From Oikopleura dioica (taxonomy: Eukaryota > Animalia > Chordata), in assembly GCA_907165135.1 (NCBI GenBank), contig OU015566.1, positions 11,594,001-11,658,000 on the forward strand: DNA of 64,000 nt, in the 5' to 3' direction. Below the pieces are notes generated by a model. That model was not told the origin of the DNA. It saw nothing but the letters and a program-made list of their open reading frames with translations, and did no database searches. A program made the position numbers and the translations under genes. Positions within the stretch are counted from its first letter, which is position 1; the number at the start of each line of letters is the position of its first letter. Positions 53,166-61,033 of this stretch are shown here, in pieces.

Positions 53166-56142
53166 CTACTTGAGGTATTTTTTGAAGATTTCGTCGCGAG
53201 CACGCTCCGAGAGACTCCTGTCGCTTTCAAGGCAAAACAGCAGGTCGCGGATTTTGACACGGCATGTTCGCACAGGCCTGTTGCTAGAGGTGTTCACGGT
53301 CGTCGATGAGGACTGAAAATGGAGTCAATAAGAGGCTTGGAAATCAAGGAGGACTACCGCAACGTTCCGCGGCCTTCTGCGGGACGCTTCTAAGGCAGTT
53401 TCGTCAGCTTGCTTAAGTTGCTGTTCATCTTGAAGCTGTTGCTGCTTCAGCTTCGCTTCTTTCTTCTTTTTGTCGCGGTCTGGGTCATCATCTTTGCCCT
53501 TCCGCGATCTGAGCAATTTAGCACGTTGCTCTTGTTCAGCTTCATCCGCGTCCCGTTTTTCGATAACCATCAAATCTGAATTCCTCTTAGAAAAACATCA
53601 CAAAAAGAGCACCTACCAGAAATATACTTTAATCGGCTTTTTACATCGTTGAGCTTTTCTATATGCTCCGTTTCTTTAAACTGGATTGATCTATGAGAAG
53701 CGGCGTGAATCGCCTTGGAAATTATCGTTTTTATGTGATCTTCAAGGGCAAGGCCCATGAGTCGCGCGCCGTCCGGAGTCACTCGTTGGATCCCACCGGC
53801 TTTGCTTGCCGCCTGGCCGACAAGCTTGTGCAGAACTAAAAAGCTGGTGAAGATTCGACAAAATATGAATTTGACAATTCAACCAGTGGGTTAGATTTAT
53901 TCATGATCAGAGCTATTCTCCGAACTTACTTTGCTCATTGACGGAGACGGCTTTGTCCCCGCCGGGCGCGCTTCTGACTTCGCTTCCTACAACCGTAGAT
54001 GCATTGTTCAGATGCTCAGCTTCATTCGCCAAGTCGATCTGTGCCATACTGGCAACGTCCGTAATATCGTCGTCGCGAGCTTCATCTCGGTCCATCGACG
54101 TTATCTTCATCTACGTAAGTCTCTTTTTAGCGAAGAATCTCTCAAGAAAAGTTCACCTTGTTTGGCGGCTCTCCGGGAAGACGGCCGACAGGTTGGCCTG
54201 GCCTAACGCGGTTTGGCATGTTCCGCGGAAGGCGGATTTGAGGATGATTCGGTCGTACTACATTGGTCGTGGGACCCGCGGCTAAAGAGAATAATTGTTA
54301 TTTCCTGTAGGAAATGTGCGAGTCATTGGAGCCCTTTTTACCCAGTACTTACGTCTGATAGCTCTGACGGGAGTGCCCGGTGGACCTCCCCCTTGGGGTA
54401 TTCGTACTTGCTGCACAGGTCGCACAGGACGAGGCTAGAATGAACAAGAGTTAAGACTTGTCGATGTGAAGAGCATCATACCCCGTTTTGTCGATTTTGA
54501 CCCGATTGTTGCATGGATCGGCGAAGCAGGGGCAGTGAGTTTTCAAGGAACGGAACAAGGTATGGCTAAATTAAAGCGTGAAAACAACGAAAAAGATACC
54601 ATTCATGCAAATAAAGTAAGTATCATGCAACATGCAACATGCAATTTTTTCACCGAAATATGGACACTTTGAAAGGTGTTTCCTGAAAAAATAGCTTTCA
54701 AATTGTCTATTTCATTTGTTTTTCATGCAATGGGGGATAGAACGAATCTTATGCGATAAATTTTCGGCTCTTAAAATTTCTTTGTGGCTGATTACCGACA
54801 CGTCCTCGATTTTGTATCGCCAAGTATAATTATCGCCCTATTAATTGTCATATAATCATTCCCAGTATTGTGACTGTGTCTCTCTATTTTGTTCCTTTTA
54901 ACAATCAACAAAACCATTTTGCAAATCAAAGAAATGCGATCAGAAGCAGAATCCTGTCTCACCGCATTCGCATCTTTCTTTGCATCTGACTATATGAAAT
55001 AATAAGGGGCAATTTCAATAAGGGATAATTGGAGATAATTGAAGCTCATTCCGAAGATAAATGATTGGAAGTGATGTTGATTATTATATTACGGGCTCCG
55101 GAAGTACGAAATTCTTTTCTTTGCAGAACTGTTCTACAACCTGGGGGCTGGATTGTAGCTCGGTTTGGAGACGCTCTGTGAATACTTGGGCAGTAATCCG
55201 ATCATCAATGAGCCGCTGGACTAGGTCACGCACATTCGTGACTACTTCTTTTTTATCATTTGTCGAATTGCGCTTTTACGGAGGTCAAGAAAGAAACTTG
55301 AAGGAGATAAGCTGAATTTTGAAGTTTGAATCCGTTCCTGTGCAAGTTGAATAAGCGTCATAAGGAAATTCTTGCACTTGTGAACATTTTTCTGCTCTTC
55401 TTCGGTGAGGGGAGGCGCTGGTTGCCCACCTCCCGCCGGGGCGCCAGGAGCAATTGGTCGGGGCTGACGAGGCGTGATCATTCTTGGTCCTCCTGGAGCT
55501 CCTCCAACAGGAGCGGGACTCTGAATTTCGTAGAATTGAGTCAATTCTTCGTCAAACTTACCGATAAAACAACCTGTCGGATTCCAGGGCGAATATGCGC
55601 CGGGGTTCCGACAGGTCTCACCGCCTGCTGCTGACCCGGCTGTTGAACAACTTGACCGAGGGGTTGTTGCTGCTGTTGCGGCTGGGAAATCTGAGGTTGC
55701 GGCTAGAAATTTAGGTTGAAAAGGGGAACGGAGTTGATTGAGGAATCACCATGATTTGTCTGATATTGGGTTGACTATTTTCTACTTTGAGAATCGGCTG
55801 CACCGGCTGAGGCTGATGGTGCACGGATGTGATTACTTGTGCGCCTTGTGAGTGGGGCACCACCGTGCTGTGCCCGTCACCAAGAACCCCGTTGATCATT
55901 TGAGGTTGAAAAGGCTAGTAACACCGATAAATGAAGTCCAGCGATGGAAAACATCGCGGTAGAACACAAACCTCCTCTTTGATAGTCGTTACTTCCGGCT
56001 TAATGACATCGGACTTGACGCCTTGGACATCAGGGAGCAGATTTTGATCCGAAAACGACTCTGTAACGACGCTGTTTGGATTGACGAGACTTCCGTTCAA
56101 CGGGCCACCTCCTGGTGGTGGTCCTGGGATACCTGACATCAT
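53166..56142 (-). CDS. TAF4: TFIID subunit 4
   Basis: Q/P-rich N-terminus; TAFH domain (NVHKCKNFLMTLIQLA|..SSPQ|PYLVPFL); histone-fold region; C-terminal RVKIRDLLFCLESDR..KYLK*. Confidence 0.95.
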
Positions 56143-57423: not shown

Positions 57424-57565
57424 TCTAGTAGATTATATTCAAAGAGTTCTTTCGAAGATAAACGATGTTAAATGAGTAGCAGTGGAGTGTGTGATACTAT
57501 ATCAGTTAGGGTTGGACATATTTTGGCGCCCAGCCGGCAGCTAAATCAGTCTAGTAGACGTCAGC

Positions 57566-57965
57566 CTAGTTGGATTTGAGATCTCCCCAAAGAGATCGGC
57601 GGACGAGGGGCAGTGTGTCTTCAAGGAAGGGGACAAGGAATGGCTTAACATGAGTTAATGGACAACAGATCTGTTCTATAACCTTTGGGGAGCAGTTAAG
57701 CTCGATTTGGAGACGCTCTTCGAATGTTTCGGCAGAAATACGATCATCGACGAGTTCCTTGACAAGATTTTTGACTTCTTCTTTCTTGCCATCGCGCTTT
57801 TTCAGGGGTCAAAAAAGATACTCAAGTGTATAGTGACTAGTCAGATTTCTTTTCTTGAATCCATTCCTCTGCTAGTTGAATCATTGTCATAAGGAAGTTC
57901 TTGCACTTGTGAAGATCTTTTTGCTCTTCTTCAGTGATGTTCGGTTTTTCTCCGGGGCCAGCCAT
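57566..57965 (-). CDS. 96-aa stand-alone TAFH (NHR1)-domain protein, partial paralogue of the neighbouring TAF4
   Basis: Exons 57965-57867, 57796-57683, 57643-57566: MAGPGEKPNITEEEQKDLHKCKNFLMTMIQLAE|RDGKKEEVKNLVKELVDDRISAETFEERLQIELNCSPK|PFLVPFLEDTLPLVRRSLWGDLKSN*. Both introns sit at the same positions as in TAF4. Confidence 0.88.
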
Positions 57966-58020
57966 TCTAAAACCTCTTTTTTGAGAGTCTTTTCAAATTA
58001 AATATGTTTTAAAATCATTG

Positions 58021-58656
58021 TCAGCAAGGTTTAGTTCCATATTTAGCTGCCCAGCCAGCAACTTTATGAGAAACAGGTGTTGTCATTCTCCAAGGATCCG
58101 TCGCTCCAAGATGCATTTTTCTGTCGAAATATCTATCAAGCCGAGTAAAGGGATCTGCTGGAATTCTTCGTGTGTCGATAACTCGCCATTTTTCATCTTA
58201 TTTGGGAGTAGAGATGGTTTTCTTGAAAATAAAATTACCTTGATGTCTATTTTTATCTTCCTTGTCGAGCTTTGACTCCTTGTTCCAGTGACTTTGGCCG
58301 AATGGGTATTTATCCGCGTTATAAATCCAATTGTGTGTCGGGTAGACAGAGCAGACAATCGCTGGTCGACCACTTACCTTCAAGAGAAATTAGGAAGAAG
58401 AGTAGGTTTGTCTATTTACAGTTGATTCTTTGCACCAGGGACACTTTTTCGCCGATTTGATGTCCGTGTGACCCTTTCCTTTGTGGTTGATCATTCCGGG
58501 CTCGCGGCCGGTGTATTCCTCGGCCGTAATGGGCGTTTTATGCTGTCTGGGCACGCGCTTGGCTGGACGCGCGACGAAATCGATCGGCTCACGCGTTGCC
58601 AGTAATTTTTGCGTTTGGCAAAGCTCGCGACGCGCTAGTCGGATCATCCCGCTCAT
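58021..58656 (-). CDS. MRPL36: Mitochondrial ribosomal protein bL36m-like with N- and C-terminal extensions
   Basis: Basic presequence-like start; CPWC-x12-C-x5-H (CPWCKESTVSGRPAIVCSVYPTH), the bL36 zinc-ribbon spacing with conserved GR and PxH; 3 exons. Confidence 0.7.
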
Positions 58657-59438: not shown

Positions 59439-60219
59439 CTAGCGCTGCTCTAGAATCTTATTAGCTCGCTCGTTGGCCCCGTCGATGCGTCCGTGGTTCA
59501 TTTCGGCTTTGCCCGTGATGCGGCCAATCTGCTCGTTCTGCTTCTCCAGCTCGCCGCCCATGTCGATTGCCATGTTTTTGAGGTTTCCGATCAGCGCTCC
59601 GACCTGAAAATACGGGTTAATCGGGCAGCCCTCACTCTTACTGTAAAAACTTACATGATTGAGGTTCTGTTCCATTTCGTCTTCTCGCTCGTCGTTGTAA
59701 TATCGCTTCACGGAAATTGTGTTTCCAGGATTCTAAAAATAATTATTAGATGCAATGAGCTTCTTCAATTTGAGTCTGTTACTGATCCTGGTCAACTTAC
59801 AGCGAGTCCTTCAGAATTGTTCTTATTCGGCTGCTCTGTGACTGGAGACGATTCTTTTCCACTCTTTCCTCCGTTCCAGGTCTTTTTGTATTTTTCGCTA
59901 GACTCGAAATTCACTGCCTAAAGGATCGGATACAGAAGAATAAATCGACATTTTCCCTAACCTTTCTCCAAGGACAGATGCAGCATCCGCAGCATTTCTC
60001 CAAATTCGTCAGTTGTTCTTCGGCTTTCTTCATGTCATTATTGATTTGGTCCATGCCTTCTTCGATTCTATTCAGCTGCTCGCCCTGTTCGTCGAGCATC
60101 ACCAGCGTGTTGACTCCCGCGTCGGCTGCGTCCTCCATCATCGTTCGCATTCGACGGGTTGCGTCGACCGACTCGTTTGTCGCCTTGTTCGCCCGATCGT
60201 TCATTGCCTGCTGATCCAT
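59439..60219 (-). CDS. SNAP25: SNAP-25 family Qbc SNARE
   Basis: [32 protein letters not shown]; [31 protein letters not shown]. Confidence 0.95.
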
Positions 60220-61033
60220 TCTAGATGCAAAGAAACGGTCAATTCAACAGGTAACAAGAGAAACTTTGAATAAATGCGGTGTGTTGCTAAATGCTTTCCT
60301 TTCTTACGTTTTCATTAGGTTAAACATGATTCTTTTTGCTAACTATGGATTTCAAGAGAAGCTTGACACAAGTAAAATTTATTCTAGAGACATGATAAAT
60401 GACTTACATCAAGTTTGGGGAGAATTAAAACTGAAGTATTCGTAAATTAACTGTCTCTTTTGTAGAAAGTGCAACTTGTATTTTCTTCGAAACTAAAAAA
60501 AATCTATATTTGAGCGTATGTTCAAATGTCGAATTAGTCTATTTTTCGTACAAATAGCAATTTGCGATTAATCTTTATGCTCGGCTTACGAATTGAGTAC
60601 AGAGTTACTCAGACGACAAATTTGAAAAATTTTACGATGCGATGATTCATCCTTTCATTACTGTTATCTTGCCTTCTGTTTTCTATTTGTGTGTGTTCAG
60701 CGTGACGAATAGCTGGACAATGATCACTTTCGAAGTTTTAGAATTTCAGATATTTTTTATTCTTATGCAAAAGAGAAACTGATACACAAGTTTGAATATT
60801 GTAGTATTATTATATTGAGTTTATGTACGTATATTGTTATATGGCAAGAATCTCGGTGGTATTGGTGAGAAGAAGAAGTCCAAAATTGTTCATCTTCAAG
60901 CATCATTTTAGCGAGCTCGTTGAAAACAAACAACTACTGTAATTGATTTGGTTTTTGGTGGTGCTTTTGGGCAGAGAATACAGAAATAAAGAAGATATTT
61001 TAAATATTGAATTAGAGCGAAATTGATACGATT

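Follow-up and report, generated by a model that had tools for sequence, protein, structure and literature searches.

The window analysed here, a 64,000-nucleotide stretch of genomic DNA from Oikopleura dioica, carries on its minus strand a row of four genes: gene X, for which no Pfam family was matched, a small gene encoding a TAFH domain alone (hereafter the TAFH-only gene), BBS5 and TAF4. The four lie head to tail on the same strand, separated by spacers of 55, 142 and 174 nt (Table 1). Operons of Oikopleura have been defined for working purposes as genes on the same strand with at most 500 bp between them (PMC11067885), and the row falls within this definition, in agreement with the initial annotation, which had placed the TAFH-only gene and TAF4 in one putative operon. 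The 5′ end of gene X is trans-spliced: RNA reads from a sister lineage have the spliced leader joined by its 3′ end (…TCCGATTTCGATTGTCTAACAG) at 58656, and the same string is printed in an O. dioica paper. Upstream of gene X, open frames resembling a SNAP-25-type t-SNARE with a cysteine cluster, CCGCCICPW, were noticed by eye at 59442-60243 (minus strand).

Table 1. Positions of the TAFH-only gene, its neighbours and the parental segment of TAF4 in the window
Feature	Position	Strand	Details and evidence
Gene X, upstream	58656-58021	-	Stop TGA 58023-58021; 5′ end 58656 with Oikopleura spliced leader in sister-lineage reads
TAFH-only gene, candidate spliced-leader acceptor	57972-57966	-	TTTTAG|A directly before ATG; sequence
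TAFH-only gene, exon 1	57965-57867	-	ATG 57965-57963, 33 codons; RNA contig piece 57955-57867 joined to 57796
TAFH-only gene, intron 1	57866-57797	-	70 nt, GA..AG, GAG|GAATGG...AAAAG|CGC; RNA joint 57796/57867 (plus-strand ends CT..TC)
TAFH-only gene, exon 2	57796-57683	-	38 codons: loop, helices H2 and H3; RNA-supported
TAFH-only gene, intron 2	57682-57644	-	39 nt, GT..AG; RNA joint 57643/57683
TAFH-only gene, exon 3, coding part	57643-57566	-	25 codons and TAG (57568-57566)
TAFH-only gene, 3′ UTR as far as the RNA contig goes	57565-57484	-	RNA contig
BBS5	57423-56317	-	PF07289, E 1.3e-33 on exon 1; ATG 57423, stop 56319-56317; 142 nt downstream of the TAFH-only gene
TAF4, parent gene	56142-53169	-	TAFH and C-terminal TAF4/histone-fold region (PF05236); apparently intact
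TAF4, copied segment	55442-54480	-	TAFH exons 55442-55338, 55272-55141, 54565-54480
TAF4, introns in the copied segment	55337-55273; 55140-54566	-	Intron 1, GA..AG; intron 2, 575 nt; RNA reads/alignment

The TAFH-only gene occupies positions 57965-57566, and its frame, read from the window sequence, runs through three exons to give a 96-aa product. Exon 1 codes for an N-terminal tail and helix H1 (HKCKNFLMTMIQLA), and exon 3 for helix H4 (PFLVPFLEDTLPLVRRSL) and a short diverged tail; exon 2 has an 18-nt in-frame deletion relative to TAF4 and holds the bulk of the gene-specific replacements. The start codon stands in the context TTTTAG|A ATG G. Both introns, the GA-AG one included, were found to be spliced in a 348-nt RNA contig (1 mismatch) that starts at 57955 and reads through the TAG to 57484 without a join to BBS5. 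The RNA evidence consists of this one contig, of low depth, and of a single environmental sample, an oligo-dT (poly(A)-selected) marine plankton metatranscriptome. The structure of the gene is confirmed by it, as are its splicing and its presence in poly(A) RNA. The contig spans both junctions and matches, base for base, the gene model proposed beforehand: an open frame of 96 aa that approximates one TAFH domain and has a start and a stop of its own. Raw RNA-seq runs (X5-X7) come from a sister lineage that lacks the TAFH-only gene (90-95% alike in conserved exons) and are uninformative on its expression, start and end. Exon 1, intron 1 and a part of exon 2 are also found in an independent genomic contig (L001, ENA, 95% identical), and the gene is therefore not an assembly artefact. 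L001 differs from the window by a 6-nt insertion in intron 1 and, in exon 1, by one replacement (G5E) and two silent changes, and 15 nt of the 3′ UTR at 57551 are missing from the metatranscriptome contig; these differences are natural alleles of the gene. Intron 2 is in frame and stop-free, so that its retention would add 13 residues (VIEQICCPLTHVK) in the H3-H4 loop with no truncation.

In the same metatranscriptome sample, assembly gave one contig for the TAFH-only gene and another for the 3′ end of gene X, with a gap at 57956-57989 between them, and BBS5 and TAF4 were not assembled (the BBS5 exons were at zero depth). The separate contigs fit a separate, not especially rare mRNA of the TAFH-only gene, at a low depth and with filters that forbid a firm claim.

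Origin of the copy in TAF4 and its age

The TAF4 gene is apparently complete, and P0002 aligns with it from residue 124 to the stop at 53169. Its TAFH domain lies about 2.1-2.5 kb downstream of the TAFH-only gene, and over 96 aligned codons it and the TAFH-only protein share 62.5% identity; the homology noticed by eye in the initial annotation is confirmed, and the figure of 55-60% given there was slightly low. The two genes have both intron positions in common, as had also been proposed, down to the GA donor of intron 1: the junctions are those of the RNA contig, and the intron ends can be aligned between the copies. Intron 1 is 79% identical to intron 1 of TAF4 over ungapped columns, the first ~17 nt of intron 2 align with TAF4 intron 2, and at the nucleotide level the homology spans intron 1 and reaches into intron 2 from either end, indicating that the copy was made from DNA and not from mRNA. 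The GA donor of TAF4 itself was observed in sister-lineage RNA reads (exon end CAG|GA at 55338) and by comparison of sister transcripts (L004, L005) with genomic contigs (L006, L007: CAG|GAACTGG). Since TAF4 of the sister lineage also uses a GA donor, the GA-AG intron is old in TAF4 and was passed on to the copy. The donors read AG|GAATGG in the copy (57866-57861), AG|GAACGG in the window TAF4 (55337-55332) and AG|GAACTGG in sister TAF4 (L006:705-711, L007:1327-1333); the first two fit an AG|GAAnG consensus, and the sister-lineage donor has T at the fifth position.

Intron 2 of TAF4 (54566-55140, minus strand) is 575 nt long, compared with 39 nt in the copy, and contains a short repeat of GCATGTT type (gcatgttgcatgttgcatga). 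The difference reflects either an insertion into TAF4 or the loss of most of this intron from the copy. Two further proposals, that the ATG of the TAFH-only gene arose from an ATT codon of TAF4 and that its tail is a frameshifted TAF4 sequence, were set aside as possibilities only, the homology being no higher than in shuffled controls. Recent gene conversion of exon 1 is not claimed; third-position divergence is 25% in exon 1 and 39-44% in exons 2 and 3, a difference too small to support it.

The distribution of the gene was examined in two environmental genomic contigs, L008 and L010, which come from sister lineages and match the window at ~79-80% identity; in both, the last exon of gene X is followed by the start of BBS5. 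Gene X and BBS5 are 127 nt apart in L008 and 97 nt in L010, compared with the 597 nt that hold the TAFH-only gene in the window, and the gene is absent from the spacer in both contigs. Its absence in two sister lineages makes the TAFH-only gene young and lineage-specific, and not a conserved larvacean regulator. The intact partial duplicate of TAF4 proposed in the initial annotation is confirmed for the lineage of the window. With the TAF4 genes of two other lineages (C and O) as outgroups, the tree ((TAFH-only gene, window TAF4),(C,O)) was the best in three likelihood analyses (AU values of the alternatives 0.045-0.32), and third-position patterns likewise place the TAFH-only gene as sister to the window's own TAF4. 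This sister position and the difference in spacer together lead to a lineage-specific partial duplicate inserted in an intercistronic spacer. The third-position distance between the TAFH-only gene and TAF4 (0.39) is like that between the TAF4 genes of two lineages (0.40), and the copy is therefore not very recent; splits between cryptic lineages of O. dioica have been dated to ~7 and 25 Myr (PMC11067885). The ancestral gene X-BBS5 spacer cannot be aligned with the window, and the insertion breakpoints and any target-site duplication are not definable.

No convincing stand-alone TAFH gene was found among the 375 TAFH proteins returned by an exhaustive search of representative proteins. None of these is more than 61% identical to the TAFH-only protein, save an exon-1 fragment (P0001), and the best match is a TAF4. 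About 17 short TAFH matches were rejected as stand-alone genes: most end in PQPYLVPFLK followed by junk and are exon fragments running into the conserved intron. A word-indexed protein search with the 96 aa returned only P0001, a prokaryote-style frame over exon 1 of the 95%-identical genomic contig, and a scan of JGI metagenomes only TAF4 orthologues. No stand-alone TAFH regulator turned up in the published literature searched either, as the initial annotation had supposed. TAFH has multiplied in some taxa, with 2, 3 and 9 matched stretches in P0003, P0007 and P0025, respectively.

Domain content and predicted binding surface

The sole Pfam match of the 96-aa protein is TAFH (PF07531; 83.4 bits, E 1.2e-23, cut-off 27, profile positions 2-75 of 90). 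The stop codon follows nine codons after the domain, and the TAF4/histone-fold region (PF05236) is absent, as had been noted from the open frame. The NHR2 oligomerisation domain and the NHR4/MYND zinc finger, by which ETO/MTG proteins are recognised, are also absent. The TAFH-only protein is a member of the TAFH family, but neither a TAF4 nor an ETO protein. Its closest solved structure is the TAFH domain of human TAF4 (2p6v), with ETO next.

An AF2 model, a prediction guided by an alignment of ordinary TAFH domains, has a pLDDT of 84 and places helices at residues 12-34, 38-49, 55-66 and 74-95. The best PDB match of the model is again 2p6v (TM 0.73, rmsd 1.5 A), a four-helix fold in keeping with a TAFH domain; the fifth helix of the vertebrate TAF4 TAFH is absent from it. 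Ligands of TAFH dock between H1 and H4 (PMC7948954), and the pocket residues of human TAF4 perturbed by the YAP activation domain are F599, L603, L606, Y642, L653 and L657 (PMC12022045). The corresponding residues of the TAFH-only protein are F24, M28, L31, Q63, L74 and L78, and the pocket of the parent TAF4 differs from it at position 28 alone (L versus M). The groove, whose loss was looked for, is therefore retained, and with it the hydrophobic pocket between H1, H3 and H4.

Evolutionary rate and alternative explanations

Is the TAFH-only gene under selection? By codon-model likelihood, the dN/dS of its branch was estimated at 0.47-1.1, depending on outgroup and region, compared with 0.02-0.05 for TAF4. 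Values of 1.0-1.1 came from a three-taxon analysis with a distant outgroup, whose branch is saturated; this was replaced by a four-taxon analysis with a nearer outgroup, which gave 0.67 for all codons and 0.47 for the domain. Codon-wise parsimony was dropped because of 39 ambiguous codons. The shift in rate between the TAFH-only gene and TAF4 is highly significant (LRT 29-38), and the TAFH-only gene evolves 10-30 times faster. Since the duplication, it has accumulated 33, 19 and 25 changes at codon positions 1, 2 and 3, respectively, against 1, 1 and 11 in TAF4. For the gene as a whole, a dN/dS of 1 was not rejected (p 0.1-0.3), and a neutral copy with as many changes would remain free of stops about 10% of the time. 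The argument of the initial annotation, that divergence without a frameshift or stop suggests selection, is not borne out in that form by these values, with dN/dS not significantly below 1 overall.

Constraint on the gene emerged only from finer tests, namely those on the H1 and H4 parts, conservative replacements, profile score and a deficit of indels. The exon parts coding for H1 and H4 have a dN/dS of 0.25 (p 0.035 versus 1, uncorrected), and exon 2 (H2-H3) one of 0.83; for the whole gene, dN/dS thus comes close to the value of 1 that the initial annotation had named as refuting, and for these two helices it is lower. In simulations of neutral change from the inferred ancestor, 47 +/- 3 amino acid changes were obtained, compared with the 38 observed (p 0.0025). 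When simulations were forced to 38 changes and scored against a TAFH profile built from 150 other proteins, the neutral products reached 51 +/- 9 bits (max 85), and 0/1500 reached the 101 bits of the real protein. The mean BLOSUM62 score of the replacements is +0.24, compared with -0.65 under neutrality (p 0.002). All 7 positions that are invariant in the family are kept in the TAFH-only protein, together with 20 of the 28 nearly invariant ones; about 7 positions at least 90% conserved in animal TAFH domains are altered only in the copy (L28M, N40E, Q46K, T59E, S68C, Q71K, S81T, Y73F). Indels in the 240 nt of domain sequence are all in frame (net 18 nt, in a loop), compared with ~6 mostly non-3n gaps in the 70-nt intron 1. 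All four splice-site dinucleotides and a good start context have been kept after ~28% nucleotide divergence. Identity to TAF4 is lower in the coding sequence (68%) than in intron 1 (79%). Our reading is that selection on the TAFH-only gene is weak but real, acting for a folded TAFH domain and most strongly on the helices that bind ligands, whereas change elsewhere is relaxed or possibly adaptive.

On these data we tentatively prefer, as a plausible account well short of certainty, that the gene, young and expressed, yields a protein competing for the ligands of TAFH. That the gene is instead a transcribed relic must be taken seriously as a possibility in its own right. Such a relic would be a promoter-less duplicate in an operon, spliced by the signals that it inherited and drifting to decay with no useful protein, its open frame and likeness to TAFH being leftovers. 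A whole-gene dN/dS indistinguishable from 1, a rate 10-30 times that of TAF4, the loss of about 7 residues conserved across the family, a neutral chance of ~0.10 of having no stop and the limitation to one lineage all point this way. However, the replacements are more conservative than neutral ones by each of the three simulation measures, H1 and H4 have the low dN/dS given above, and the domain has only in-frame indels, unlike the intron. The survival of the splice dinucleotides and start context also argues against decay, as does the informative RNA sample, in which the TAFH-only mRNA was assembled but neither of the neighbouring genes BBS5 and TAF4.

If the protein is functional, it need not be a decoy: the fast H2-H3 face and a new acidic surface may have been positively selected for a new partner, making the protein an adaptor for a disordered region of a transcription factor, or its stabiliser or chaperone, and not a competitor of TFIID. 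This seems unlikely. By hand count, the net charge of the TAFH-only protein is about -4, compared with +1 for the parent domain, and exon 2 holds 22 of the ~31 changes at first and second codon positions that are specific to the gene. A mean dN/dS near 1 despite a large constrained part implies values above 1 elsewhere, and the higher divergence of coding sequence than of intron 1 points in the same direction. The dN/dS of exon 2, however, is 0.83 and not above 1, short introns are themselves constrained and make a poor neutral yardstick, 96 codons in one copy are too little for a formal site test, and no second surface that could recruit a partner is known for a single domain of this size. 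Far less probable still is that the gene is not independent, and that its exons belong to a longer product or to BBS5, as 5′ exons or an upstream frame. The TAFH-only gene and BBS5 are on the same strand, only 142 nt separate the former from the ATG of the latter, and the RNA may reach beyond the end of the contig. Splicing into BBS5 or a longer product was looked for, but the RNA contig continues unspliced through the TAG for 82 nt and ends 61 nt short of the BBS5 ATG, no donor is used after exon 3, and the BBS5 exons have zero depth in the same sample. In L008 and L010, moreover, the BBS5 ATG directly follows the same CTAGA context (TAG|A ATG) without any TAFH exons.

A putative decoy and its relation to known systems

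The competing-product reading, which remains the one we prefer, may be set out as follows. About 0.9 kb of TAF4, comprising the three TAFH exon parts and their introns, was copied at the DNA level and inserted between gene X and BBS5, in a short spacer ~1.3 kb upstream of the TAF4 start, after the Oikopleura lineage of the window had split from its sister lineages. Because this spacer lies inside a head-to-tail, operon-like row of genes, the copy needed no promoter and is transcribed together with the genes around it. It is spliced at the two introns kept from TAF4, and its 5′ end is probably made by trans-splicing at the candidate site TTTTAG|A ATG. Translation, if it occurs as we infer, would yield a 96-aa protein with a predicted four-helix TAFH fold that keeps H1, H4 and the hydrophobic pocket on which short hydrophobic activation motifs dock. 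The product would be without the histone fold, which anchors TAF4 to TAF12 in TFIID, and could therefore not enter TFIID; at 11 kDa, it could diffuse into the nucleus. Soluble in this way, it would most likely compete with TFIID-bound TAF4, and with any ETO-type protein, for the TAFH-binding motifs of activators and corepressors, a titration of the kind exerted by microProteins. Selection on the gene is weak, and what remains of it acts on the fold and the binding helices. Ectopic TAF4 fragments that contain TAFH but not CRII alter cell growth (PMC4200853).

Resemblance to TAF4 is closest, as the direct parent. The TAFH-only protein has in common with the TAFH of TAF4 (human 2p6v) the Pfam family, the predicted H1-H4, the pocket residues and, with the adjoining TAF4 gene, the two intron positions. 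It differs in having neither the glutamine-rich N-terminal region nor the C-terminal TAF4/histone-fold region, and so no way into TFIID, as well as in the missing fifth helix, the 18-nt loop deletion and the much faster rate. The NHR1 domains of ETO/MTG proteins (CBFA2T, Nervy; 2h7b, 2knh, 2pp4) also have the four-helix TAFH fold, and NHR1 of ETO binds short hydrophobic motifs such as HEB AD1 between H1 and H4. The TAFH-only sequence, in contrast, is nearer to TAF4 (E 9e-17) than to ETO (E 3.5e-8), contains none of NHR2 to NHR4/MYND and is derived from TAF4.

MicroProteins and dominant-negative single-domain paralogues are exemplified by the Id/Emc HLH proteins and, in plants, by LITTLE ZIPPER and miP1. 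The TAFH-only protein would likewise be small, a single interaction domain taken from a multi-domain regulator without the effector part, and by analogy titration would be expected of it. Structurally, it is what a microProtein of this family would look like, with 96 aa, TAFH alone, a sister position to the window TAF4 and introns in common with it. No microProtein built on TAFH or aimed at TFIID docking was found in the literature searched. Isoforms and truncations of TAF4 that split TAFH from the histone fold change transcription and growth (PMC4200853, PMC3788782); these are splice forms or laboratory constructs of TAF4 itself, mostly deleting TAFH, whereas here a separate gene encodes TAFH alone. 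Plant RST-domain proteins without WWE and PARP, relatives among the alpha-alpha-hubs (PMC7948954), similarly present a hub domain, found also in plant TAF4, in reduced architectures, but they belong to a different domain family and kingdom, and no common descent was found by sequence analysis in that review. A protein from an environmental eukaryote (P0005, on contig L003) resembles the present case in that a TAFH of larvacean TAF4 type was taken from TAF4 into a small protein; however, it is intronless and fused to a RING finger, and represents an independent event and not an orthologue. At L003:2100-3910 (ENA ERZ508537 NODE_5610), KSKKRK comes after its intronless TAFH, then a RING finger that one intron interrupts, and just upstream lie a YEATS open frame and a near-identical RING tail; the arrangement looks like a tandem pair of genes combining a reader or docking domain with RING.

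New here are the restriction of the gene to one lineage, its insertion at the DNA level into an intercistronic spacer and the contrast between its dN/dS and its conservative replacements. A more ambitious reading would see in it a newly born, positively selected regulator, the first natural stand-alone TAFH protein and an animal microProtein tuning the access of activators to TFIID, created in one step when a promoter-less fragment fell into an operon spacer and was expressible at once by polycistronic transcription and trans-splicing; we consider this rather doubtful.

Insertion into operons has been proposed as a route to expression in O. dioica (PMC11067885). Whatever its function, the TAFH-only gene is a clean, datable case of gene birth, in which a partial duplicate became a cistron with spliced poly(A) RNA by landing in an operon, and it lends support to the published proposal that, in Oikopleura, operons free moving genes from the need for a promoter (PMC11067885). 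The difference in its presence between cryptic lineages provides functional tests with an internal control. Should the protein be made and bind ligands of TAFH, the gene would be a natural experiment separating the activator-docking module from TFIID, one that would reveal whether transcription can be tuned through competition by a free TAFH.
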